A stretch of 64,000 bases of DNA from the sequence record NC_070882.1. One strand, written 5' to 3'. The notes under the pieces were generated by a model that was given only the letters and a program-made list of their open reading frames with translations, did no database searches and had not been told where the DNA came from. This document shows positions 22,780 through 60,529 of this stretch, piece after piece. The number at the start of each line of letters is the position of its first letter. Positions within the stretch are counted from its first letter, which is position 1. The translations under genes were made by a program, and so were the position numbers.

Positions 22780-25700
22780 TCACCGCAAATATGCGGGAAC
22801 ATTAGATTTGGGTTTAAGGGGTATCTCGAAATCAACTGCCGGAATCTCGATGTCGAATTTTTCGAATGCTTTCTGAAGAACGTTGTGTATTACTTTGTTC
22901 TCATCGAACTCTGTTTCATCACCATGATCTTCCATTGCTTCTCCAATTTCAAATGGAGATTTGATACCCATAATCGCTTCTACCTGATCTTGACTCCATT
23001 TAAGAATATCAGCCGATCGGGTAGAGATATTTGGGATATCTCCAGTATCGAGAGAACACTGGTAAACGACAACTTGAGAATCTTGACCTAAACGATAAGC
23101 ACGAGATATAGCCTGTTCTAGAATATAAGCTCTGAATGGACTATTCAATAGAATCAGAGTATCTGCCATTGTCAGGCGAACAGCTGTAGATAGAGAAGCA
23201 TATGTAGCATTGAGTGGATTTAGTTCCTTACTCGAATCGAAACGTTTAACGATTTCAGCCAGTTCATTAGTAGTCTTCCCATAAACGGCCAGTGGTTTCA
23301 TACCTAGCTTAACGCAATGTGTATCCGCAGCTTCTACTGCTTCAACAAAGCTAGTAAACATAATCGTCTTCTTGTGAGTGGATTCTGTAATACCGACCCA
23401 GTCAACATACGGGACCATTGCCACGTGGCATTCAATACGTTTACCACCTAACACACGTCCAAGACATTCACCTTGAATCTTAAGGTTAGTATATTTGATA
23501 ACCGATTTAATATCCCTGAACTCATGGATGAACTGCTTTGGAAGGGAAGGACCAAATACTAATTTTTCATATTGGTTCGTTGCTTTAATTTCCTCTCCTG
23601 CAAAGCGTGGATCAGGGATCTGTTGAACATACTTGACCAGATCCAAGTACTCTTTGAAGGCTCTTTCCTGTGCGGCTGTTTTGAGGGTTTTTCGATGGAG
23701 TCCACAGAACTCTGCCCAGCGTCTATCATCTTCAGGTCTCCGCTTCTTGTAGTAAGCCCAGCGTTCTTGAATAAATGCTTCCATTACCTTTCTAATAGCC
23801 GGAAGGGTGAAGTCATCACCATTCGGAATTTTAATTGGATAAGGACGCATGATCGGGGGCTCTAGATCGAGTTCTTGTTTCTCTACCTTGTAGGATACAA
23901 GACCTAATCGATGTCTGATAATATCGAGTCCTTTAGAGGCTTCTTTACCATACATCTTCTTGAAGCGTTCTTCTACCTGCGGAGTGAATAGAGGATCTAC
24001 TATTCGCAGTAAGTTAATCAGTTCAACACCCAATGCTTTTACAGGCGTACCCGAAGCTAAAAGATTATTACGAGAACCGACCATCTTTACAATGAGTTGA
24101 TAAAGTTTAGTCCGTGTAGAGTTAGGGTCATTCATGTTGTGCGATTCATCTAGAATCGTCACAGTACGTTTGCTACCAACTATATTACGGTTTCTAAGAA
24201 GTTCTACTACCTTATCCATTGCATCGTAATGACAGACGATCCAACGCTGTCCTTTGTAGGGCATATTAGGTTCGAACGTATGCCAAACTGTTTGCGGTTT
24301 ATGGAACATCTCTTTCAGGGAATCTAACCAGACTAGATCCAAAGCATTCTTAGGGCACATTACAACAATGAGTTCAGCATCAAGCATCTCGGCAATAGCT
24401 GAAGTAAGATATGTGTTATGTGTCACTATGAAATCGTTCGTAATAAACAAATGATCAGGGTGCTCAACGCTAATGCATTGCGTCTCAATCCTTTCGGAAA
24501 GATTTACGTGTGTGATCTTAAGCTTGAGTGTTTCACCGGCATACTGACCGTTATCATTACATCGTTCGCGTTTGCGAGTTAATCTAAACAACGTGCTGGG
24601 TTCAGGGAAACGAACGTTAACCCGATATGCCGCGTTACCTTCACGACGTTCACCAAGATAAGTGTAATGCGGCTCTCTAACCTGAATCTTAGCAATGCCG
24701 CCTAACGATCTAATCAGGTATTGGAATTGAGTAGCCAAACGGTAACTACTACTACAGAAGCTAACGTTACTATTCTCATCTACGGTACCATCGGTGTCCA
24801 TTAAGCCCTGGATGATTGCCAAACGTTGTTCCGTCGATCCATGGAGATACTGGTCAGGAATAAACTTATCAAGGGCTGTCTTACCCATTAATCCGAGTTC
24901 ACGAAAAATATCGAGATAGGTGTTTTTCTCCCCGTCTTTAGCAACGATACCACGCGTCTTATGATCGCGAGTAACAAACTTAAGGTTATCCGGAAGTTTT
25001 ACCAGATCAAATATTTCTTGATCACCCTTAGTAATATCGATACCTTTAGATAGGCATCCATCGCCTAAGATAACACCGAGGTTATATGGATCAATAGGAA
25101 GATCTAGGGCTGGAGTATCTTCGGATTTGCAAAGCTGGATATACAAACGATTCTTAAAACTCGGCATTTGCATGTAAGCAAAGAGTTCTTTGGTATTGAT
25201 TATTTTCCAACCATCTCCTCCATATCGTGTCCAGTCGTATTTATAGACGCGCCAAAGATGTTCATCGCATGCATCTACTTCCCGCCCATCTTTGAACTTG
25301 ATCGTGAAAGTTTGACGCTTACCTTGTGGGTACACGCCGGTCACACGTGTAGGGGTACCATCCCAAGCGGTGACAATATCGCCTACTTTAACATCACCCA
25401 TTTTAATCCAGCCACCTGGTATCTTGATGTCGGCGTCCAAACGAAGAGATTTACCCGTACCGGCGGCCGCGGCAATTAAGTCACCATTTAGATTGTATTG
25501 ATCTAGCCGATATGTGTAGTTCTTGAAATACTCTAATTGATACGGTTTTGGATCAAATTTTAATCGAGACAGATTAGCTAGATTAAGTCTCCCTTGTACT
25601 GATTTCTCATCAATGGCTTTAGTAGAGGCAAGCCAAGTATTCTGTAAAAGCGCATCTTTAATAGCAGCGATCATTTTTACAGAGGTGTATCGAGAACGGT

Positions 25701-25929
25701 AATAGACAATGTTTTCCAACATGTACATTACTTCAGGAGCAAAGAACTTATAGAAGCTTAATGAGTTCCGACCAATGTTGTTGAACAAGTTGGTTGTAAT
25801 CTTGGAGGTCTTCCAATGCTTACTGATATCTCGGACTATGTCGAATCCACGAATACCAGAGATGATAATCTCCGTTTCAGTTTCTTTGACTGTCAAGCCG
25901 CCAAATATCGAACGGAATGAGTCTAACAT
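22780..25929 (-). CDS. SNF2/SF2 helicase (phiKZ gp203-like) containing an intein
   Basis: Walker A AAAGTGK|T split by the intein; ILDESH Walker B, ASGTP, QAISRAYRLGQ motif VI. Confidence 0.85.
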   Translation of the reverse strand: MLDSFRSIFGGLTVKETETEIIISGIRGFDIVRDISKHWKTSKITTNLFNNIGRNSLSFYKFFAPEVMYMLENIVYYRSRYTSVKMIAAIKDALLQNTWLASTKAIDEKSVQGRLNLANLSRLKFDPKPYQLEYFKNYTYRLDQYNLNGDLIAAAAGTGKSLRLDADIKIPGGWIKMGDVKVGDIVTAWDGTPTRVTGVYPQGKRQTFTIKFKDGREVDACDEHLWRVYKYDWTRYGGDGWKIINTKELFAYMQMPSFKNRLYIQLCKSEDTPALDLPIDPYNLGVILGDGCLSKGIDITKGDQEIFDLVKLPDNLKFVTRDHKTRGIVAKDGEKNTYLDIFRELGLMGKTALDKFIPDQYLHGSTEQRLAIIQGLMDTDGTVDENSNVSFCSSSYRLATQFQYLIRSLGGIAKIQVREPHYTYLGERREGNAAYRVNVRFPEPSTLFRLTRKRERCNDNGQYAGETLKLKITHVNLSERIETQCISVEHPDHLFITNDFIVTHNTYLTSAIAEMLDAELIVVMCPKNALDLVWLDSLKEMFHKPQTVWHTFEPNMPYKGQRWIVCHYDAMDKVVELLRNRNIVGSKRTVTILDESHNMNDPNSTRTKLYQLIVKMVGSRNNLLASGTPVKALGVELINLLRIVDPLFTPQVEERFKKMYGKEASKGLDIIRHRLGLVSYKVEKQELDLEPPIMRPYPIKIPNGDDFTLPAIRKVMEAFIQERWAYYKKRRPEDDRRWAEFCGLHRKTLKTAAQERAFKEYLDLVKYVQQIPDPRFAGEEIKATNQYEKLVFGPSLPKQFIHEFRDIKSVIKYTNLKIQGECLGRVLGGKRIECHVAMVPYVDWVGITESTHKKTIMFTSFVEAVEAADTHCVKLGMKPLAVYGKTTNELAEIVKRFDSSKELNPLNATYASLSTAVRLTMADTLILLNSPFRAYILEQAISRAYRLGQDSQVVVYQCSLDTGDIPNISTRSADILKWSQDQVEAIMGIKSPFEIGEAMEDHGDETEFDENKVIHNVLQKAFEKFDIEIPAVDFEIPLKPKSNVPAYLR
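24415..25449 (-). mobile_element. Intein with LAGLIDADG homing endonuclease (345 aa)
   Basis: Starts SLRLDADIKIP after GTGK and ends FIVTHN before T. LAGLIDADG blocks LGVILGDG and IIQGLMDTDG. Confidence 0.9.
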
Positions 25930-25955
25930 GTGGGTTTATCCTTAAGGGGTAAATT

Positions 25956-25965
25956 CATAGAATTG
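25956..25965 (-). promoter_or_regulatory. Candidate late promoter of the helicase
   Basis: Minus strand CAATTCTATG contains the phiKZ late TATG motif about 27 nt upstream of the start codon. Confidence 0.4.
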
Positions 25966-25986
25966 GCCTACGTGTAAGATTTAGAA

Positions 25987-25995
25987 AAAGATTAC
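25987..25995 (+). promoter_or_regulatory. Candidate phiKZ-type middle promoter for the ncRNA
   Basis: AAAGATTAC matches AAanntTAC; centred about 24 nt upstream of 26014, where the RNA stem begins. Confidence 0.45.
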
Positions 25996-26010
25996 TAAAA
26001 CAGTAATGAT

Positions 26011-26192
26011 ATAGTCAAGGCAGTCGCGCATAGCGCTGCACTTTAAGGGGGTGATCCAGCCGATTCTTTAACTTGATACGTTAAAGTATTTGCGGGAGCA
26101 AAGACGAGTATCTAACTACGGTGCCTTGACGACTATGTTTGGACTCTCTAATCTAAACAGACATATCGCCCGGCTCAATGCCGGGCTTTATG
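26011..26192 (+). ncRNA. Structured ncRNA antisense to the 16S rRNA 3' end
   Basis: ORF-free interval. Closing stem ATAGTCAAGGCA / TGCCTTGAC(GAC)TAT with internal hairpins. 26044-26062 TAAGGGGGTGATCCAGCCG is 18/19 identical to the reverse complement of the 16S 3' end. 26116-26134 resembles the complement of 16S 1493-1514. Terminator at 26168-26192. Confidence 0.7.
26168..26192. terminator. Hairpin terminator (bidirectional candidate)
   Basis: GCCCGGC-TCAAT-GCCGGGC-TTTATG, preceded by ACATA. Confidence 0.75.
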
Positions 26193-26197
26193 TTGTC

Positions 26198-27151
26198 TCA
26201 TCGAATCAAACGTAAAGCTGGATTGAATCCACGGCTACTACCATAAGCTGTAAAAGCATTGTCAAGCTGGTGAGCGATAGATGTGCTAAATCCACGTTGG
26301 ATACAACGGTTATCTTCAGTAACAGCTTTATAGAAAATATTCAAGCCATTACCTGGAGCTATAGACGATGGTAACTGATTACCATAACGACTACGTTGAT
26401 AACCAGAATACAACTGTCCAGTTGGGTTTACTGCTGTATTGAATAGACGTTCGAAGGTATCTAAAGCTAGATCATTCATCACATGGAGACTTACCATCGC
26501 ATCAGTAGCATTGGTGTATACTACCTTATCACCATGTGGGATACATCCAACAGCAAAACTATTACCATTCCTAGAATAGATCTTACCTTGCATTACAGCT
26601 GGATTAGTAAGAGATGATGGCAAAGTACCAACACCATCTTCTACCGTATCAAGGAGAACACCTGCCCTATAAACATCCATGAATGCCATTCCAGAATATG
26701 GAACTCTGTTCGGGATGTAATACGTTATACCTTTGAACTGTATCTTCCATGCTTCTGTTGGTTGATCAACAGTATTCGTGAAGTTAGATGGTAAAGCAAA
26801 ATTTGTTTTAAAATCAGCTACCTCAAAAACATCTTCGATTGGACATGTTCCGAAGTAGCCAATCCACCAGTCACCGAATACGGGAGTTTCGGGACCAGGT
26901 CCTTTATTAGTGTAATCAATAATGCAAATAGCTTTTACATCACTCAATACGAAAGAACCTGTATTGTCCGTACCAATAACAAGATAGAAATAAGGTGTAT
27001 CTTTCAAAGCAGTATCGTCTACAAATTCTCGATCAGTAACATCCAGCTGCTTAAAAACAGCTGGAAGATTATTCACATCAAATGGTTCTGTAGAACGATA
27101 AGCTTTTAAGTCAACAATATCACCTGTAACCGAAAAGCCTACTTTAATCAT
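26198..27151 (-). CDS. Virion structural protein, paralog family member 1
   Basis: FN3-like N-terminus (AYRS...FVDDT...YFYLV), GPGP...GD...GYFG motif, C-terminal GFNPALRLI. Confidence 0.7.
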   Translation of the reverse strand: MIKVGFSVTGDIVDLKAYRSTEPFDVNNLPAVFKQLDVTDREFVDDTALKDTPYFYLVIGTDNTGSFVLSDVKAICIIDYTNKGPGPETPVFGDWWIGYFGTCPIEDVFEVADFKTNFALPSNFTNTVDQPTEAWKIQFKGITYYIPNRVPYSGMAFMDVYRAGVLLDTVEDGVGTLPSSLTNPAVMQGKIYSRNGNSFAVGCIPHGDKVVYTNATDAMVSLHVMNDLALDTFERLFNTAVNPTGQLYSGYQRSRYGNQLPSSIAPGNGLNIFYKAVTEDNRCIQRGFSTSIAHQLDNAFTAYGSSRGFNPALRLIR

Positions 27152-27159
27152 CGAATCAC

Positions 27160-28110
27160 CTATAGCTCTAGTTCTAGAATTGGCATGAATGCAGCCGCGC
27201 TATTTACCAGAGTACTGGAAACGTTTATAAGCGCTGCACCTCTGACCAATATAGACTGGGTTTCACCTACGAATGTACGCGTCATGAAGATACCCGAACC
27301 AGGTGCGCCGCCCGTCATTACAACGTTCGTTGAAGTCGAGTTAACGCGTGTTTTAAGGTTAGGCTTATTGATGTTCGATGCATATGCAATTAGACGATCC
27401 CATGTGAGACCAAGTAGATCATTAAACTGATCATAGACAGCCTGTCCAGCAGCTATACTTGCGAGTGATCGTTCACCAGCAAATGTAGGCAGGCCAACTC
27501 TGTAACTATGATTCTTAATAATGACAGTCTTACCTTGTTCGGTTGGCGTACCAACTACAGTCTTAACAGGAGCAGGAAGATCATCCCAATGGTCTCCAGG
27601 TGTTGACCAAGCACAACCCGCATTATAGACATCGACCCAACGTAGGTTATAAGCCACGTAGCGAATTGGTAGCATGAAAATGCGCCCATCTACAACGAAC
27701 TTATGCCAAATAAAATCCGTTACAGGTGGAATTCTAATATCAGTCAAAAGACTGAGTCCACAAAGATCTGTTATTTCACCAGGTAATACAAAATCTGGAA
27801 CCTCACCAAAATAACCTAATTCATAGTCTCCAGAACGAAGGGTATTTGGTCCGAAACCAGTGTAAGGCATGTTAGCAAGTGCAACCACTTTGGAATAGGT
27901 TACATCACCATTCTCAAAATTAGAACCGATGCAGTAATAGTAGACTTTATTTCTAATAGCTGTTGTATCATCGTATTCTTTGATGTTTCCTTGCACATTA
28001 ACTAATACACTAGGTAATGTCGATTCATCGAATTTTGTTTCAGATCGAAAAATATCAAATGTGACTGCTTCTCGATCATTGGTCAAACCCCATTGTACTT
28101 TAATACCCAT
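27160..28110 (-). CDS. Virion structural protein, paralog family member 2
   Basis: IFRSE...YDDTT...YYYCI, GFGP..L.SGD...GYFG, WHKF, C-terminal FMPILEL. Confidence 0.7.
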   Translation of the reverse strand: MGIKVQWGLTNDREAVTFDIFRSETKFDESTLPSVLVNVQGNIKEYDDTTAIRNKVYYYCIGSNFENGDVTYSKVVALANMPYTGFGPNTLRSGDYELGYFGEVPDFVLPGEITDLCGLSLLTDIRIPPVTDFIWHKFVVDGRIFMLPIRYVAYNLRWVDVYNAGCAWSTPGDHWDDLPAPVKTVVGTPTEQGKTVIIKNHSYRVGLPTFAGERSLASIAAGQAVYDQFNDLLGLTWDRLIAYASNINKPNLKTRVNSTSTNVVMTGGAPGSGIFMTRTFVGETQSILVRGAALINVSSTLVNSAAAFMPILELEL

Positions 28111-28112
28111 GA

Positions 28113-29099
28113 TTACACCTCAAAGTCAACGAAGTTACCAGGGATAAGTTCCAGTACAGGGAACCAAATGTTTGAACTTGAGGTTCTACCTGTATGTTGA
28201 GGTACAAGAGCCGAAGCTTTCGTTGCACTCGTACTTCGCGAAATATATGCAGAGGCTGGAGTGGTTGGAGTATCTCGTGTTAGAATAGCTTTACTATTAA
28301 CACGTGTAGCCTCATTGTCACCGGTTACGTTAACTCGTTCCAATGTTTTATTAGCATAGAACTGGCTAGTCATACCAGCTAAAAATAACTCGACGGTACC
28401 ATTGCTGAGAGATGGGTCAGAATTACCTAATGCAGTCGCTGCGGATGACGATAGATCACTAACAGAATTAGGATCATCGTGATCAACTAGAACGGAAGGC
28501 AAAGATACTTCAAATTCAGATAGAGCAAAATTAATTCGCTTGCCCTGAGGAACAGGAGTAGTCACACCAGGGACAGCGGATGGTACCGCGTTCTTACTGT
28601 ACACTAGACCCGCATTATAGAGGTCCATCCAGTACAGAGTACCAGTAGCGATGGAATATTCAGGTACATAGAAAGTCCGTCCTTTCCATGCGAATTTATG
28701 CCAACGTTGACCAGCATTATTAGCTGCGGTCCAGGACAAACCACAACGAGCGATTAGTTCACTGTCCGAAATAAATTCAACAGTGGGAAGAGAACCGTAG
28801 TAACCATAATTGATGTTACCTGCAACTAAGCGCTGTGGACCAGGTCCAGTGAAAGGTACCGCATGGAACTGGAATACACGAGATTTAGCTACATCCCCAT
28901 CTTTCGATGATTCAAACATGTAGTAGTAAATAAGTCCATATGTAAGCCCTTCGTCAGCATAACCATCAACGTCACCATTGACTTCTGCTATTGGTGTACC
29001 AGGGTTGTTTCTATCAATCATTGTTGCCGATCGATAAATTTTAATACTTACGGACGCGTCGTTTGGGTTTACCCAACGTAGATTGATTGTAAATGCCAT
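28113..29099 (-). CDS. Virion structural protein, paralog family member 3
   Basis: IYRS...YADE...YYYM, GPGP..L.AGN...GYYG, WHKF, WFPVLELI. Confidence 0.7.
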   Translation of the reverse strand: MAFTINLRWVNPNDASVSIKIYRSATMIDRNNPGTPIAEVNGDVDGYADEGLTYGLIYYYMFESSKDGDVAKSRVFQFHAVPFTGPGPQRLVAGNINYGYYGSLPTVEFISDSELIARCGLSWTAANNAGQRWHKFAWKGRTFYVPEYSIATGTLYWMDLYNAGLVYSKNAVPSAVPGVTTPVPQGKRINFALSEFEVSLPSVLVDHDDPNSVSDLSSSAATALGNSDPSLSNGTVELFLAGMTSQFYANKTLERVNVTGDNEATRVNSKAILTRDTPTTPASAYISRSTSATKASALVPQHTGRTSSSNIWFPVLELIPGNFVDFEV

Positions 29100-29111
29100 G
29101 TTAAATCATCC

Positions 29112-30062
29112 TCATGTGAAACTAAAGCTATTAATTCTAACTTCAGCTGTTTTATCTATCTTTCGCGATATACTGTTCAAGTCGATAAGCGTTTCATCTT
29201 GTGGGGCATTGCTAATATAAGCAATACTTACAGGAGTTGGTAGTGAAGTAAGCTGAATAATAGGTTGAATTCCACCAGAGCTGATTTCTGTATTGGTTAT
29301 AATACTAGCTTCGGCTAAATTACTGTAAGCATTAATAGTCGTTTCTATTGGTACTAGGTGATATTCATCTTTAGGAATCAGCTCTAATACCGGACGCCAA
29401 ATACCATTATTCGTTGGGGCATTATTATTTACGGACGTGATACTTGTGTTGTAAAACTGATACATTGGGCGCTGGGCTGTATTTAATGCCTTTGTCCATG
29501 TACCGTTACCAAGACCGATAACACTTGTGGGTCTATTGTCCCAAGACCCATTAGTCACTCGTGTAAATACCTGACCAAGTTCACTTGTTGGGTCTTCATT
29601 ATTAGTTGGAGTGAATGGGTTCTCAGTTAGATGACCCATACGGATTCTAAACTGCCAGCTCCCTTCATCGTCAGTAAAATGATAGAACTTATCTTGAACG
29701 GTATTATATCCACTTGGAATATTTTGACCAATCGTGTTGTCTCCAAATACAAGGCCTTTGTCGTAAAGAACCTTCCATGAGACGTTGGTCATGTAGATAG
29801 ATAAAGGTGCAAAACAAACCTTACCCATCCAGAAATATTTAACCCATTGTTGATTAGCGAACGAACCTACAATAGAGTTGGTATAGTCGGCTATATCTGC
29901 CTGTTCGATAAACCGTTCACGAAAATAAATATCTTTCGAATCGACTAGACCGAAATACCCAAGTGTCTCATTACCCTTTATTAGGAATTTACTTCCTGGC
30001 CCAGAAAATGGATACTCTATAGCTTGCTTCTTTTGACTCAATGATAACAGCACTTCAAACAT
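29112..30062 (-). CDS. Virion structural protein, paralog family member 4
   Basis: Lacks the FN3-like N-terminus; GPG...IKGN...GYFG, WVKY, WRPVLELI, then a C-terminal extension. Confidence 0.7.
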   Translation of the reverse strand: MFEVLLSLSQKKQAIEYPFSGPGSKFLIKGNETLGYFGLVDSKDIYFRERFIEQADIADYTNSIVGSFANQQWVKYFWMGKVCFAPLSIYMTNVSWKVLYDKGLVFGDNTIGQNIPSGYNTVQDKFYHFTDDEGSWQFRIRMGHLTENPFTPTNNEDPTSELGQVFTRVTNGSWDNRPTSVIGLGNGTWTKALNTAQRPMYQFYNTSITSVNNNAPTNNGIWRPVLELIPKDEYHLVPIETTINAYSNLAEASIITNTEISSGGIQPIIQLTSLPTPVSIAYISNAPQDETLIDLNSISRKIDKTAEVRINSFSFT

Positions 30063-49582: not shown

Positions 49583-49907
49583 AATCGTAAGTCGTAATCT
49601 ACTGCAATCCACTGGTGCTTGGGCAGTCGTCCATAACCGTGCTACCATGGACTTCATTGCTATCGGTCATGACCGTAAGGTTATTAAAGGTATCAGTCTG
49701 GGTTATCCGGTGAATGTTGGTGATGTCGATTTCAGTCATGTCGTGGATGTCCCCATGACCTTCGAAATCAGTTATCAAAATGATCCTCATCTGGGTCATC
49801 CTACTGGTAATATGGAAGCTCTTCTGAAAGCTATTGAAGAAACTACCCATAAAACTCTAGGTCTTCCTAGCAAGTTTACCGTAGCTTCTAACGATGGAGG
49901 CGTTTAA
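49563..49907 (+). CDS. Hypothetical protein
   Basis: ORF coupled (TAATG) to thyA; start probably the ATG a few codons in. Confidence 0.55.
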   Translation: MKMTISEIVSRNLLQSTGAWAVVHNRATMDFIAIGHDRKVIKGISLGYPVNVGDVDFSHVVDVPMTFEISYQNDPHLGHPTGNMEALLKAIEETTHKTLGLPSKFTVASNDGGV

Positions 49908-51337
49908 TGCATCAGTATCTACAACTACTTGAAGATACCCAGAAGTACGGTGTATTTAAAGGTGACCGTACTGGTACGGGTACTACCTCTTTGTTCGGTA
50001 GACAGTTCCGCTATGATCTTCGTAACGGTAACCTCCCTGTAGTGACCACCAAGAAGATTCATCTTCCGTCGGTTGAAGAAGAACTCAACTGGATGAAGTC
50101 TGGTGACACTCGCCTTGAGTATCTCCTGAGCAAGAACGTTACCATTTGGAATGAATGGGTTAAACCAGGTACTGAAGTATTTGAAATTGTTTCTGATGAG
50201 TGGCTAACCACGGCTGTTCAGAAAAAGTTCAAAAACGTTCCATTTGAAATGCACTTCAGTAATGAGATCGGTGATGTTGATTGGAAGTGGATTGATCCCG
50301 AGCATGATAAATCCGCAATGCTTCTGATTAACCTGAAAGCATGGGGTGACGTTAATCGCTTTGGTCCAGGGCCAGATGCATTCGATTATTACGGGATGGC
50401 TCTACGTGTTTATCGTATTACCATTGGTGACTCGAAGATCGTAGTCCGTGACAATGATGGCATGCTCTGTGCTTATCGTTTGGTTGGTGGTGACCTAGGT
50501 CCGGTTTATGGTAAGACATGGCGTGATATTGATGACGTTCGGATTGTCCCCAAAGTCGACTGGGTTAACTACGAGAAACGTGGTTTTAAATTCGTGGTAG
50601 ACGTACCTGGTGAAGACTATACTAAAGACGAGTGTGTTATTCGTCGACGTGTGGATCAGGTTCAGGAACTCTTGTATCAACTGGAGCATAATCCGGATAG
50701 TCGTCGTCTGATTATCTGTGCCTGGGATCCTCGGTTGGTTGAAGATCAAGCACTGCCTCCATGCCACGCATTTATTCAGTTCTGGACCCGTGAACTGACT
50801 GTAGATGAACGAGTGCAAGCACTAGACCAAACCCAGTTCGAAGCTGATGCTTACCATGATCAGATTAGCGGCGGAACTACTCGCGGTCAACCTCCGTTCG
50901 GTAGTGCTGAACAGGTTAAAGCACATCTGCGTATCTGGCGCGGTGATAAACAGGCTACAGATGAAGCAGTGGTAGAATGGCTGGATCAGCATGGTGCTCC
51001 GAAACGAGCTATAAGTTGTCAACTCTATCAAAGATCGGCGGACGAATTTTTGGGCGTGCCCTTTAACATCATGTTCTATTCGCTGATGACTCATCAGTTG
51101 GCGAACCAGTTTAACATGGTAGCAGAAGAGTTCATCTGGACTGGTGGTGACTGTCACATCTACAGTAACCATGAGGAACAGGTTACTCTGCAACGTTCGC
51201 GGAATACTTATCCTACTCCTACCATCCGCTTCAAGCCTGAGGCCAAAGGTAAACCTTTCCTTGATATTACTCGGGAAGATTACGAGATTCTGGATTATCA
51301 GTTCCATCCGCACATTGCTGGTAAAGTTGCTGTTTAA
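49907..51337 (+). CDS. thyA: Thymidylate synthase with insertions
   Basis: DRTGTGT, PVVTTKK, IWNEW, GPVYG, SRRLII, ALPPCH, YQRSAD..LGVPFN, YSNH motifs; hairpin at 51345-51362 follows. Confidence 0.95.
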   Translation: MHQYLQLLEDTQKYGVFKGDRTGTGTTSLFGRQFRYDLRNGNLPVVTTKKIHLPSVEEELNWMKSGDTRLEYLLSKNVTIWNEWVKPGTEVFEIVSDEWLTTAVQKKFKNVPFEMHFSNEIGDVDWKWIDPEHDKSAMLLINLKAWGDVNRFGPGPDAFDYYGMALRVYRITIGDSKIVVRDNDGMLCAYRLVGGDLGPVYGKTWRDIDDVRIVPKVDWVNYEKRGFKFVVDVPGEDYTKDECVIRRRVDQVQELLYQLEHNPDSRRLIICAWDPRLVEDQALPPCHAFIQFWTRELTVDERVQALDQTQFEADAYHDQISGGTTRGQPPFGSAEQVKAHLRIWRGDKQATDEAVVEWLDQHGAPKRAISCQLYQRSADEFLGVPFNIMFYSLMTHQLANQFNMVAEEFIWTGGDCHIYSNHEEQVTLQRSRNTYPTPTIRFKPEAKGKPFLDITREDYEILDYQFHPHIAGKVAV

Positions 51338-53558: not shown

Positions 53559-55763
53559 ATGACTACTCAAAATTACGTTATGCTGAACGAACAAAATGAA
53601 TTCCCAATTAAAGCTTGGGTTAAGGGTGTCCCCGTTGAGGCTGATGCTAAACGTCAGCTGAAAAATATTTCGGGTCTCCCATTCATTTACAAGCATCTGG
53701 CTGTAATGCCTGATGTCCACCTCGGTACTGGTGCTACCATCGGTTCCGTAATCGCTACACGGGGTGCAATCATTCCGTCTGCGGTGGGGGTCGATATTGG
53801 ATGCGTTGACAAGGAGACAGAATTCCTTTCTCCAAATGGATGGAAACGAATTGATGAATGGAATGGTGATTCAGTTCTCCAGTACGACAGGCTTACTGGT
53901 GAGGCTAGCTTCGTAGAACCTCTTGCTTACATCCGCAAACCGGCAGATAAGTTCTATCACCTGAAAACCAAATACGGTGTCGACCAAATGTTGTCACCTG
54001 ATCACAAGGTCCTTTATCGCAAAACATCGCGTAATGGACCGATGGCAGGTGAATTGGCGGATATCAGTGTAGAAGAGATTTTCACAAAACATTCCCTGAA
54101 TGAACAGGGATGGTCTGGTCGATTCCTGACTACGTTCATACCTAAGCTCGATACATCACTCCCTCTGACGGATGAGCAACTGCGGGTTCAAGTTATGGTA
54201 ATGGCTGACGGGCATTTTGATAATCGCCGCGATAATCTTCGGTGTAGCCTTCACTTCAGAAAAGAACGTAAAGTCAGTAGAGCGATCCAGCTTCTGGTGG
54301 ATGCTGGAATTGACTACACCTACGATGTGAAAGAATGGGCTGACGGAAAGACTTCGGTCATCGCATTCAATGCGCCCATACGCTGGAAGTCTTTGGGGAT
54401 GTTCTGGGAAGCTAGTCATGAACAGCTCAAGATTATCGCTGAAGAGTGCCTGAAATGGGATGGTAGTGACGAACATAGTTGTTTCTATACTCGTGACAAG
54501 AGTGCAGCTGACTTCATTCAATATGCATTCACCGCCTGTGGTACTCGTGCTCGTCTCCTGACGGATATTCGTGTCGATGGTTCTCGTGATTATCGGGTGT
54601 TTGCGAACTCCAATACCGAGGTGGGAATTAAGAGCGTTCCAAAAACCCCTATCGAGGTTGTAACTGGTCTTGATATGGAACAGTTCTGCTTCACCCTTCC
54701 GAAAGGTTACTGGGTAATGCGGCGGAACGGGTGCGTGGCAATCACAGGTAACTGTGGAATGGCAGCTCAGTTGACTGATCTGACAGCTAACGACATGACC
54801 CGTGGCCTACAACATCTTCGTTATAGAATCGAATCTCGTATCCCCCATGGTCGTACTGACAATGGGGGACCTAACGATCGTGGTGCATGGAGTGACTTCA
54901 ATAATGTCTATAAGAAACTTGAACCTGAGCTCCAAGTTCAGGTTAAGAAGCTTGAAGAGGAACTGAAGCTCATTGTAGCTAAACACCCCAAACTGGGTAA
55001 AGCAGCTAACCGTGCGTTCAACCATGCCGGTACCCTCGGTACCGGTAACCACTTCGTCGAAATCTGTCTGGATGAACAAGATCGAGTTTGGATCATGCTC
55101 CATTCGGGTTCTCGTGGGATCGGTAACGCTATTGGTCGGTACTTCATCGAGAAAGCAAAAGAGGAGATGCGGCTCTACCACATCAACCTGTCCGATCAGG
55201 ACCTCGCTTATCTGCCGGAAGGTACCAAGTACTACAGCGATTACATCGAAGCTGTACATTGGGCTCAGCGTTATGCAGCACTCAACCGTACCATCATGAT
55301 GCGGGCGACCATTGAGGCTGTAGCTGATTACATGGGTCGTCCAATCAATACCAGTCTCACTGCGGTCAACTGCCACCACAACTACGTGTCGTTCGAGAAT
55401 CACTTCGGTGCGAAAGTATCCGTTACTCGTAAAGGTGCTGTACGGGCAGATGAAGGCATGTATGGTATTATCCCTGGATCGATGGGTGCAAAGAGCTTCA
55501 TCGTGAAAGGTAAAGGGAACCGCGAGTCCTTCTGTTCGTGTTCGCACGGAGCAGGACGTGTCATGTCCCGAACCCAAGCCGCTAAGACCTTTACTCTTGC
55601 TGATCATGCTCGTGATACTGCCGGTATAGAATGCCGGAAAGACATTGACGTAATCGACGAGACTCCAAAGGCTTATAAGAACATCGAAGACGTAATGGCT
55701 GCTCAGGATGACCTCATTGAGATCGTCCACACCCTGCGTCAGATTGTTTGCGTCAAGGGCTAA
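53559..55763 (+). CDS. rtcB: RNA ligase RtcB containing an intein
   Basis: MPDVHLG, VGVDIG|CG, GTLGTGNHFVE, MLHSGSRG, CHHNY, IPGSMG, SCSHGAGR, DETPKAYK motifs. Confidence 0.95.
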   Translation: MTTQNYVMLNEQNEFPIKAWVKGVPVEADAKRQLKNISGLPFIYKHLAVMPDVHLGTGATIGSVIATRGAIIPSAVGVDIGCVDKETEFLSPNGWKRIDEWNGDSVLQYDRLTGEASFVEPLAYIRKPADKFYHLKTKYGVDQMLSPDHKVLYRKTSRNGPMAGELADISVEEIFTKHSLNEQGWSGRFLTTFIPKLDTSLPLTDEQLRVQVMVMADGHFDNRRDNLRCSLHFRKERKVSRAIQLLVDAGIDYTYDVKEWADGKTSVIAFNAPIRWKSLGMFWEASHEQLKIIAEECLKWDGSDEHSCFYTRDKSAADFIQYAFTACGTRARLLTDIRVDGSRDYRVFANSNTEVGIKSVPKTPIEVVTGLDMEQFCFTLPKGYWVMRRNGCVAITGNCGMAAQLTDLTANDMTRGLQHLRYRIESRIPHGRTDNGGPNDRGAWSDFNNVYKKLEPELQVQVKKLEEELKLIVAKHPKLGKAANRAFNHAGTLGTGNHFVEICLDEQDRVWIMLHSGSRGIGNAIGRYFIEKAKEEMRLYHINLSDQDLAYLPEGTKYYSDYIEAVHWAQRYAALNRTIMMRATIEAVADYMGRPINTSLTAVNCHHNYVSFENHFGAKVSVTRKGAVRADEGMYGIIPGSMGAKSFIVKGKGNRESFCSCSHGAGRVMSRTQAAKTFTLADHARDTAGIECRKDIDVIDETPKAYKNIEDVMAAQDDLIEIVHTLRQIVCVKG
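53802..54752 (+). mobile_element. Intein (317 aa) with LAGLIDADG-like domain in RtcB
   Basis: Begins CVDKETEFLSP after VDIG and ends VAITGN before CGM; endonuclease-like blocks VMADGH and LKWDGS. Confidence 0.88.
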
Positions 55764-58969: not shown

Positions 58970-59172
58970 TTGCAGCGCCGCCGTCACCGGGTAAAGTAAC
59001 GATAGATGGTTTACGTCGAACGTTGTCAGATCAGATTGAAGCTGAAATTTCATTGGCTTGTCGTGAAATTGAACTGACAGACATTCGTTATGTAGATCAA
59101 AAAGAAATACTCGAAATAGTGCGGCGGTTCCGTAATGACGTTCGCACAACCATCACTGATAAAGGTAAATAA
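58966..59172 (+). CDS. Small hypothetical protein
   Basis: 68 aa, ATGA overlap. Confidence 0.55.
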   Translation: MIAAPPSPGKVTIDGLRRTLSDQIEAEISLACREIELTDIRYVDQKEILEIVRRFRNDVRTTITDKGK

Positions 59173-59173
59173 A

Positions 59174-60529
59174 ATGACGATTGAAATGGATGAATTGAAA
59201 CCGATCCGCGAAGGTTTTGGTGTAGTAGAAGAAACTCGTAAGCTTGCACGCATTGTTGAGATCGATGATGTTGTGAAACACCCTAATGCCGATGCTCTGG
59301 AATTGGCTATTGTTGGTGGTTGGCAACTTTGTGTAAAGATGGGCGAATATAAGAAAGGTGATCGCGCTATTTACTGCGAGATTGATTCTCTTCTTCCTCT
59401 GGATAACGTTAAGCTCTTCGGTTTTCTTGAGAGCCGTCGGTCCGACAATCGGCGTGTAGACGGTAAAAACTATCATCGTTTGAAAACTATCAAGCTTCGT
59501 AAAGAGCTCTCTCAAGGACTACTGGTTCCGATTCCCGATGAGTTCAAAGATGAACCCGTTGATACTAACCTGACCCTGAAGCTGGGTATCCTTAAGTACG
59601 AGTCTGCTCCTCCGATGGTATCGAAGGCTCATGCAGCACGTAACGCTCCGTGGATCGTTAAGCTTGGTGCCAAGCTGATTGGTAATCTGGGTGGCGCTCT
59701 GAAACCGTGGCCTGAGATGCTAACTAAGTCCGATCAAGACCGCATTCAGAATAAGACCGTTGCGTTTTATAACCTGAAAGAAGACGGTGATGACATGGAA
59801 GTTACCTATAAGCTGGATGGTAGCTCCATGACCGTATTCTGTGTCGATGACAAAGGCATTCGTACTGGCGTTTGTTCGCGGAACTACGAACTCGGAATGG
59901 GTGGCGAGAAGTGGGGATTCATCCAGCAGCTTCGGTATTGGGTTGGTAACTTCCTTATCCGTAACCGTAATCTGTTCCGTAAGAAGACCTGGGTTACTCC
60001 AGAAGGTAAACTTCGTAATGGTATTATTCTGCCCCTTTGGACGAAAGGTACCGCTATCGAAGACAATAACTTCGTACGTGTAACTAACCAACAACAGATC
60101 ATCGAACGTCTTCTCAAGTTCCACAAGAACACCGGTCGCTTCATTTCTGTACAAGGGGAACTGATTGGACCATCTATTCAAGATAACTTTGAAGAAGTGG
60201 CTGATTACGATTATTACATCTTCAACGTGTATGAGGATGGTAATCGTGAACTCCTGCCGGCCGAAGCACGAGCTGTTGTAAAAGACCTTGGTCTGAATTA
60301 TGTTCCCGTGCTTGACCAGTGCTGGAAACCTTCTAAGGAAATGTCTGTTAAAGATGTTCTCGCTATGGCTGAAGGTCCATCTGCATTTAAGAACAAGCGC
60401 GGATACCGGGAAGGTCTGGTATTTAAGTCCAACCAACGTGTACTATCTTGGAAGGCTATCAGTAACGCATATCTTCTCAAGAAAGCAAAAGAAGAAGAGA
60501 AAGCAGCTGCTAAAGAAGACGCTGTATAA
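59174..60529 (+). CDS. ATP-dependent RNA ligase (DRB0094/Rnl2-like) with N-terminal OB fold
   Basis: HPNADALE...GGWQ N-terminal module; YKLDGSS, QGELIGP, FNVY, REGLVFK, WKAISN.YL motifs; hairpin at 60537-60560 follows. Confidence 0.88.
   Translation: MTIEMDELKPIREGFGVVEETRKLARIVEIDDVVKHPNADALELAIVGGWQLCVKMGEYKKGDRAIYCEIDSLLPLDNVKLFGFLESRRSDNRRVDGKNYHRLKTIKLRKELSQGLLVPIPDEFKDEPVDTNLTLKLGILKYESAPPMVSKAHAARNAPWIVKLGAKLIGNLGGALKPWPEMLTKSDQDRIQNKTVAFYNLKEDGDDMEVTYKLDGSSMTVFCVDDKGIRTGVCSRNYELGMGGEKWGFIQQLRYWVGNFLIRNRNLFRKKTWVTPEGKLRNGIILPLWTKGTAIEDNNFVRVTNQQQIIERLLKFHKNTGRFISVQGELIGPSIQDNFEEVADYDYYIFNVYEDGNRELLPAEARAVVKDLGLNYVPVLDQCWKPSKEMSVKDVLAMAEGPSAFKNKRGYREGLVFKSNQRVLSWKAISNAYLLKKAKEEEKAAAKEDAV

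Follow-up and report, generated by a model that had tools for sequence, protein, structure and literature searches.

The Shine-Dalgarno (SD) sequences of mRNAs, including extended ones, pair with the 3' tail of 16S rRNA. Synthetic antisense oligomers directed against the same 3' end are classic translation inhibitors, and protein hibernation factors such as RMF cover the anti-SD region. 6S RNA is a decoy that mimics an open promoter and sequesters the sigma70-RNA polymerase. In Haloferax, a fragment of Val-tRNA is described as a ribosome-associated small RNA that sits on the 30S subunit and blocks mRNA binding (PMC11009984). Non-coding RNA (ncRNA) candidates have also been reported for phage phiKZ, by Grad-seq (the PHIKZ297/298 intergenic region and p40's untranslated 5' region, or 5'UTR) and by ONT-cappable-seq (17 5'UTR-derived candidates). 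Here we analysed a window of 64,000 nucleotides (nt) of the sequence record NC_070882.1, to which all coordinates refer, and we describe an element located at 26014-26192 on the plus strand. It is a stand-alone non-coding structured RNA gene, with a predicted RNA of about 178 nt, which carries a highly conserved segment, hereafter arm 1, complementary to the 16S 3' end.

Arm 1 has the same partner and the same register as mRNA SDs, and its core, AGG(A/G)GGUGAUC, is a textbook full SD. The element differs from mRNA SDs in having no start codon or open reading frame (ORF), in a complementarity of 17-19 bp that extends into helix 45, and in its location on an independent structured RNA that has a promoter motif and a terminator of its own. 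Like 6S RNA, it would be a small stable RNA that imitates a natural nucleic-acid ligand and occupies the recognition site of a core machine, but this machine would be the 30S subunit, not RNA polymerase, and long base pairing would take the place of shape mimicry. The long irregular hairpin with an open-promoter-like central bubble that characterizes 6S RNA is absent, and no match to the Rfam 6S family was obtained. The Haloferax fragment is likewise a small ncRNA acting in trans on the small subunit in competition with mRNA; it is a piece of an archaeal host tRNA bound at the decoding site, whereas the element is a dedicated phage gene with extended anti-SD complementarity. Synthetic oligomers share the target and the expected block of SD-dependent initiation, but they are man-made, whereas in the element a natural and conserved antisense block forms part of a folded scaffold. 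The outcome would be the same as with RMF, namely an anti-SD unavailable to mRNAs, but RMF is a host-encoded protein, whereas the element is a phage-encoded RNA that would act by base pairing. The phiKZ ncRNA candidates come from the same phages and show the same build of promoter and early terminator, but the main texts reporting them mention neither this locus nor complementarity to rRNA; the phiKZ element, which lies upstream of PHIKZ204, could be among the 17 ONT-cappable-seq candidates. The supplementary ncRNA tables of phiKZ and 201phi2-1 aside, neither the locus nor a phage RNA with complementarity to the 16S 3' end was found described in the literature searched, which included work on phiKZ and 201phi2-1 by Grad-seq, dRNA-seq and ONT-cappable-seq, the work on PhiPA3 ChmC and on ribosome targeting by phiKZ, and a 2026 review. 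The element lies outside all the families compared and belongs to the base-pairing or decoy type of small RNA (sRNA), with an unprecedented target.

Arm 1 is a conserved complement of the 16S rRNA 3' end

Arm 1 (TAAGGGGGTGATCCAGCCG, 26044-26062, plus strand) is the complement of 16S positions 1524-1542, that is, of the anti-SD tail and of the 3' strand at the base of helix 45. We compared it with the 16S 3' end of the Pseudomonas type in reverse complement, using a 51-nt sequence that occurs exactly in many Pseudomonas genomes. Of its 19 positions 18 match, and the mismatch corresponds to a G.U pair at U1537, which confirms what an earlier inspection of the letters of this DNA (the sequence-only reading) had proposed. 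Arm 1 is the sole site of this kind in the 64 kb, for an expectation of 0.02 at up to 3 mismatches; neither a second arm-1-like site nor a phage-encoded target of arm 1 was found in the window.

We collected about 20 distinct homologs, whose distribution is described below. Arm 1 is their only conserved block, with a pairwise identity of 0.89 over 18 columns versus 0.43 elsewhere. The 14 nt opposite 16S 1527-1540 are invariant except for A or G opposite U1537. The other variants are A or G opposite U1541, C or U opposite G1526, U or C opposite the terminal A1542, and a single A opposite G1525. All internal changes retain pairing via wobble, and A-to-C-type substitutions that would break the pairing, which the sequence-only reading had named as the mark of a decayed fragment, are not seen at the internal positions of arm 1. 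The GGGGG core itself is dispensable, as the Psa21/D6 group has the canonical GGAGG instead.

In order to locate the preferred pairing site, we scanned sliding 20-mers of 17 homologs against the complete Pseudomonas 16S rRNA; this procedure replaced the folding of full-length duplexes between the sRNA and the whole 16S rRNA, which had given meaningless giant loops. The best site was the 16S 3' end in all 17 homologs, at -31 to -37 kcal/mol, versus -12 to -29 kcal/mol for the best site elsewhere. Complementarity begins exactly at the terminal A1542 in 14 of 20 homologs, the other six carrying C instead of U opposite this residue, and in nearly all of them it ends at 1524/5, i.e. 5-6 nt inside the 3' strand of helix 45. 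It does not run on past the mature 3' terminus into the trailer of pre-16S rRNA. In the second homolog subfamily, complementarity into the loop of helix 45 appears suggestive by eye and upon co-folding but is not significant, the stretch just after arm 1 giving p>0.1. No conserved intramolecular partner of arm 1 was found. Arm 1 thus provides a conserved single-stranded seed complementary to a target, as expected of an sRNA.

The RNA fold is supported by compensatory changes

The overall fold consists of a closing helix, P1, which encloses a hairpin P2, the hairpins of P3 and a long stretch that is single-stranded. In P1, the 5' strand (GTCAAGGCA, 26014-26022) pairs with the 3' strand (TGCCTTGAC, 26122-26130). 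P2 (26023-26039) is present as a hairpin at this place in the 17 homologs folded, with stem sequences that differ between homologs and loops such as UUCG. The P3 region comprises P3a (CTTTAAC/GTTAAAG, 26066-26086), predicted by folding, and P3b (26089-26102), supported by folding and covariation and capped by a GGGA loop of the GNRA type; its architecture differs by subfamily, being made of either two hairpins or a single long one. Beyond P1, folding predicts a further hairpin, P4 (26136-26159), whose G.U pairs exist on the plus strand only and which has an equivalent in both phiKZ and PhiPA3. The two hairpins between the arms and the pairing of the RNA 5' end with a downstream segment (arm 2, see below), both put forward from the letters alone, are thus recovered.

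Conservation and covariation of the fold were examined over 20 homologs. Because alignments made with MAFFT only misaligned P1 and P2, we used a covariance model, and the alignment fitted by this model somewhat favours the structure. Eleven of the 12 pairs of P1 and of the apical P3 hairpin show compensatory changes on both sides, and 96.6% of the cells are paired. The covariation score was reached by none of 500 shuffles, and controls in which the pairing was slid were only 26-42% paired. In the model, P1 consists of 8 pairs, of which 7 are changed on both sides, and is 95% paired; GTCAAGGCA/TGCCTTGAC is for instance replaced by GTACAGGC/GCCTGTAC, GACGAGG/CCTTGTC or GCACTGGTAG/CTACCGGTGC, among others. 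The 4 pairs of P3b all show compensatory changes and are 100% paired, and the G and A positions of its loop are invariant in a 16-sequence alignment. About 15 cells of P1 and P3 are G.U pairs, which would become A.C mismatches on the minus strand. Since the G.U pairs, the promoter motif and the T-tract terminator all point to the plus strand, in the homologs as well, we assign the function to this strand.

A 12-sequence covariance model recovered homologs that had not been used as seeds, with E-values of 3e-6 to 3e-4. No family of Rfam (release 15) matched anywhere in the window at the gathering score. At relaxed thresholds, 25950-26250 gave chance-level matches only (Hrs12, PrrF and Yfr1, E>3) and no match to small-subunit rRNA on either strand, and scans for tRNA and tmRNA gave none.

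Promoter, terminator and coding capacity

The phiKZ middle-promoter motif is AAanTTACc, centred about 24 nt upstream of the start site, and the late promoters of this phage are TATG, with G as position +1 (PMC4666361). The sequence AAGATTACT (25988-25996, plus strand) fits the middle motif and is centred at about -24, in line with the upstream motif reported in the sequence-only reading. The AAnnTAC motif occurs at an equal distance in PhiPA3, phiKZ, Psa21 and two of the contig loci (L132 and L038; retrieved loci carry L numbers). A TATAG sequence (26010-26014, plus strand) directly precedes P1, as it does in all homologs, in the form TATG in the second subfamily. The middle motif is correctly spaced from TATAG and P1 in the window and in the homologs of subfamily 1; subfamily 2 has the late-type TATG instead. 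From the spacing of about -24 and from the TATG late promoters that start at G, transcription is predicted to start at about G26014-26016, G26014 being both the last base of TATAG and the first base of P1.

At the other end, a plus-strand scan recovered the terminator proposed earlier at 26168-26192: an intrinsic terminator formed by a GCCCGGC/GCCGGGC hairpin (26168-26186) followed by a T-tract, TTTATG. A GC-rich hairpin followed by a T-rich sequence ending in TATG or TATT stands at this position in every homolog. We also noticed that the sequence just 3' of the hairpin (26187-26195 and its equivalents) is conserved, of the type TTTATG(C/T)C, and similar to the TATG of late promoters, and that an early-promoter-like CTATATTAC lies within about 60 nt after the terminator in most loci.

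The gap had been described as free of ORFs, and indeed its sole ORF is a mechanical frame of 41 amino acids (aa) starting with TTG, which is not conserved. At the sequence level the locus has its own promoter motif and intrinsic terminator and no conserved ORF, as expected of an sRNA gene. Homologs, covariation, plus-strand promoter motif and terminator together bear out the earlier suggestion of a stand-alone structured RNA gene on the plus strand.

Distribution and genomic context of the element

All homologs come from Pseudomonas jumbo phages (the phiKZ, PhiPA3, Psa21/D6 and DT01 groups) or from related metagenomic contigs. There are 60 matching records, every one of them a Pseudomonas phage. 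The region is 100% identical in the PhiPA3-like jumbo phages PA1C, PS119XW and BRkr, and the element is 81% identical to that of PhiPA3 and about 70% to that of phiKZ. Homologs are also present in phiKZ/PA7 and HPP-Temi, in the P. syringae phages Psa21, D6 and RVTF4, in the P. aeruginosa phage pPa_SNUABM_DT01, and in jumbo-phage contigs retrieved by the arm-1 pattern. A search independent of arm 1, in the DNA around relatives of the neighbouring helicase gene, yielded homologs that still carry AGG(A/G)GGTGATCCAG(C/T)C. No element was found within 2.5 kb of the helicase gene in six metagenomic loci (L160, L402, L405, L408, L411 and L412).

In the window, the element adjoins two minus-strand ORFs, 22780-25929, which encodes a gp203-like virion helicase, and 26198-27151, the first of four tandem virion-protein paralogs. 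The whole paralogous cluster (26198-30062, minus strand) consists of genes of about 316-328 aa belonging to the same virion-structural-protein families, as judged from the three that were scanned against PHROGs. The phiKZ locus is predicted at about 212,854-213,035 (plus strand), between PHIKZ203 and PHIKZ204, and the PhiPA3 locus at about 216,217-216,386 (plus strand), upstream of gp233. In PhiPA3, the sRNA gene is co-directional with the gp233 helicase gene and upstream of it (L001, 1503-1740), whereas in the window (25929-26192), in phiKZ and in most contigs it is divergent from the helicase gene; this difference points to an inversion breakpoint at the edge of the element. The element is intact although the orientation of the flanking genes varies between phages.

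Three loci deserve separate mention. In the jumbo-phage contig L153, a minus-strand ORF resembling GIY-YIG-type homing endonucleases lies between the helicase start and the sRNA, which it shifts by about 0.8 kb. In HPP-Temi (L003, 1523-1941), three short minus-strand hypothetical coding sequences are annotated, two of which overlap the sRNA gene; given the evidence for an RNA at this locus, they are probably spurious. Finally, a 37.7-kb viral contig (L113:74-165, plus strand) contains 19 nt identical to arm 1 of the window in the loop of a GCAGCCTTGC/GCAAGGCTGC hairpin, just beyond the 3' end of a long minus-strand ORF. This copy scores E = 0.04 with the covariance model, and the stability of its fold is unremarkable; it may have arisen independently, as an analogue, or have been acquired by transfer.

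Similarity of a second segment to the 16S complement

The sequence-only reading had described a second arm and had proposed that the two arms bracket the loop of helix 45. This arm 2 (26116-26134, plus strand), composed of a CTACGG junction, the 3' strand of P1 and GACT, is similar to the complement of 16S at about 1493-1514. In the window clade the resemblance is real: the alignment, with two gaps and one A-to-G change, has a local score of 12 that was reached by none of 2000 shuffles, and the duplex, at -25 to -27 kcal/mol, is the second-best site in the RNA. The similarity is significant in the window, PhiPA3, phiKZ, L132, L403, L159 and others, but not in five members of subfamily 2, which is marked by GTACAGG. 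Among 16S sites, that of arm 2 takes second place in the PhiPA3-like group alone; it comes third in phiKZ and fourth in L132, and in 11 of 17 homologs it is not one of the four best.

The greater part of arm 2 forms the 3' strand of P1. Changes in it (T to A, T to C, G to A, G to C and TT to GG) break the 16S pairing and are compensated on the 5' strand of P1, so that, by the criterion of the sequence-only reading, arm 2 resembles a decaying segment derived from the rRNA operon and held by an internal helix. A guide or splint with two arms calls for both to be conserved for 16S pairing, and whereas arm 1 is, arm 2 is not. The bracket around the helix 45 loop therefore does not hold as a general feature, and arm 2 looks vestigial or accessory, kept mainly as a strand of P1.

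The two arms are colinear with the 16S 3' end read in antisense, and different lineages retain different pieces of arm 2, TACCTTGT in L132 and L154 and GGCTACC in L158 and L159. On these grounds, we infer for the element an origin in an antisense copy of the 3' end of an rRNA gene; this copy would have gained P3 by insertion, together with a 5' strand able to pair with arm 2. Alternatively, arm 2 may reflect convergent selection for pairing. A plain 16S fragment or rRNA pseudogene was rejected, as the similarity is limited to 19 and about 20 nt, in antisense and separated by 53 unrelated nt, and no Rfam small-subunit rRNA match was found.

The sequence-only reading had also suggested a splint for rRNA repair by the phage RtcB. 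RtcB (53559-55763) and an RNA ligase (59135-60529) are encoded in the window, but RtcB homologs occur in 17 Pseudomonas phage records versus 60 with the RNA, and co-occurrence gives this proposal no support. We also observed that the RtcB ORF is 734 aa long with its best Pfam stretch at residues 394-734, so that up to about 390 aa may be extra, and that the thymidylate synthase ORF (49907-51337, 476 aa) matches in two stretches; both ORFs may hold insertions, inteins or other.

Extended SD-like sequences in other viral contigs

When viral contigs were scanned with short patterns, most of the matches listed were ordinary SDs or lay in coding sequence. An extended SD-like TAAGG(A/G)GGTGATCC is followed by ATCT within 0-6 nt in many viral contigs that are unrelated to one another. 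Among the matches listed, ATCT follows in at least 35 of 98 and at least 24 of 109 unique contexts, for about 3 expected (loci L005-L123 and L161-L275, e.g. L009, L051, L011, L040, L012 and L239). In L051, translation shows that the TAA of the block is the stop codon of an upstream frame, and in several examples a terminator hairpin follows. These blocks may belong to short RNAs from 3' ends, in which they would be the seed for anti-SD binding, or may signal ribosomes to park. In a family of contigs (L013, L016, L044, L125, L128, L129, L135 and L143, also L058 and L139), the same super-SD directly precedes a tiny lysine-rich ORF, which is either the 12-aa ATG AAG AAG AAG CCG AAA AAG GGT GGT CGC GGC TGC TAA or, as a second type, GTG TAC AAG AAG GGC AAA AAG AAA AAG GGT AAG TAA.

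Discussion

On balance, it seems probable that the element encodes a "super-SD" of the phage, an RNA binding 30S subunits at their anti-SD tail. The RNA would be made from a middle-type phage promoter and reach the cytoplasm, with a scaffold of P1, P2 and the GNRA-capped P3 holding out the approximately 19 nt of arm 1. Arm 1 would pair with the 16S 3' tail of the 30S subunit at about -35 kcal/mol versus -4 to -10 kcal/mol for the phage's own SDs; the RNA would thus outcompete mRNA SDs, and the anti-SD would be occluded or captured. Acting as a decoy or as a tether, it would alter which messages initiate, or park 30S subunits. The phage genes are themselves SD-dependent, 26 of 38 having an SD at -4 kcal/mol or below versus 17% of control positions, and these SDs are ordinary (about -4 to -10 kcal/mol).

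Several points weigh against this reading. The predicted accessibility of arm 1 is moderate, with a mean unpaired probability of about 0.45 and an opening cost of 6-10 kcal/mol. Pairing with 1525-1529 requires melting of the base of helix 45 in the mature 30S subunit. A block of the anti-SD would also hit the SD-led genes of the phage, unless dose or timing limits it. Since all known hosts are Pseudomonas, there is no variation in host 16S rRNA against which covariation could be tested. No element was found within 1.5 kb of the helicase gene in relatives infecting Serratia, Erwinia, Klebsiella, Pectobacterium, Vibrio and Photobacterium, and the covariance model had no match in these helicase loci either. 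Lastly, the main texts of the phiKZ transcriptome papers do not name the locus, the supplementary tables having been outside the search.

The other explanations mostly concern how far the RNA would enter helix 45 and what arm 1 is kept for. That an RNA exapted from an antisense copy of the 3' end of the host rRNA gene docks on the free anti-SD tail as a toehold, invades helix 45 and remodels or disables the 3' minor domain of the host 30S or pre-30S particle is rather doubtful; in the window clade, arm 2 released from P1 would assist such an invasion. Two-arm invasion along the lines of the sequence-only reading, in which the free 16S tail serves as the toehold for arm 1, P1 opens and arm 2 takes the 5' strand of helix 45 together with the linker between helices 44 and 45, appears unlikely. 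Helix 45 would then come apart and expose its loop, so that the 30S subunit could be repaired, modified or inactivated. The significant and colinear complementarity of both arms in the window clade speaks for it, as does the reach of arm 1 into helix 45 in nearly all homologs. Co-folding with free 16S 1397-1542 also pairs both arms in 6 of 8 cases (window, PhiPA3, phiKZ, L150, L140 and L145), with a ΔΔG of -24 to -32 kcal/mol, so that toehold binding and strand displacement would be thermodynamically allowed for free RNAs in this calculation, which ignores ribosomal proteins, tertiary contacts and the m6,2A1518/1519 modification of the helix 45 loop. The changes of arm 2 that P1 compensates, the absence of its 16S site from the four best in most homologs, its lack of significance in five members of subfamily 2, and the failure of RtcB to co-occur with the element all argue the other way. 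It is likewise improbable that the RNA forms a near-blunt duplex with the terminal ~18 nt of 16S rRNA as a shield or a block to biogenesis, i.e. that it guards ribosomes during infection against digestion by 3'->5' exonucleases or against loss of the anti-SD to toxins, or else binds unfolded 16S rRNA and stops the assembly of new host 30S subunits. The limits of the complementarity, from A1542 in most homologs to 1524/5, would suit such a duplex, and pairing with 1525-1529 would be easiest before helix 45 forms. Anti-SD-removing toxins and attack by RNase R from the 16S 3' end are documented (PMC12274833, PMC10901742), but no such defence system is tied to these phages here, and the six homologs with C opposite A1542 do not fit a duplex closed at the last base.

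The remaining possibilities dispense with rRNA pairing of arm 1 in trans. It is quite unlikely that the arm-1 block has a role other than rRNA pairing, for instance in recognition by a protein of the phage or the host or in a tertiary contact, its match to 16S rRNA being a trace of the captured antisense rRNA gene. Two colinear arms, of which lineages keep different parts of the second (TACCTTGT in L132, GGCTACC in L159 and L158), are what a captured fragment would leave; a relic would nevertheless decay as arm 2 does, and instead 14 nt are invariant save for one wobble-compatible position, and a 17-nt protein site coinciding exactly with the 16S terminus would be an unlikely coincidence. We regard as very unlikely a cis-acting translation signal, that is, a very strong ribosome-binding or standby site for a small ORF or a neighbouring gene. 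The core is a perfect extended SD and a same-strand gene follows in phiKZ-type genomes, but no ATG, GTG or TTG stands at SD spacing in any homolog. The terminator follows, a separate early-type CTATATTAC promoter precedes the next gene, in the window the gene downstream is convergent, and the element is intact in PhiPA3 and in the window despite their different flanking orientations. Since both a conserved ORF and a start codon at 4-12 nt past the SD core are missing, a coding function or an mRNA ribosome-binding site was rejected. A functional minus strand, which would mimic the 16S 3' end (helix 45 and an anti-SD-like tail CACCCCC) to decoy factors, is highly improbable. Both flanking genes of the window are on this strand, which folds stably (z-score -4.1), but those genes are arranged differently in phiKZ and PhiPA3, and we rejected the mimic because the G.U pairs of P1 and P3 would be lost as A.C mismatches and because promoter motif and T-tract terminator are on the plus strand in all homologs.

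Proteins and tRNAs are known means by which phages seize control of translation. To these, a conserved phage RNA directed at the anti-SD, such as the super-SD RNA that we favour, would add an RNA-based route to ribosome capture. Should helix 45 be invaded, the element would supply the first known case of a natural RNA that acts in trans and reprograms bacterial ribosomes through rRNA pairing. The element bears on whether natural bacterial antisense RNAs can target rRNA and on the conversion of host rRNA gene fragments into viral regulators, and it would represent a compact natural scaffold for delivering anti-ribosome antisense sequences. PhiKZ and PhiPA3, growing on PAO1, are the best-studied nucleus-forming phages, so that the element is directly testable there, and it bears on how initiation may be biased or shut down by phages whose mRNAs must exit the phage nucleus for translation.

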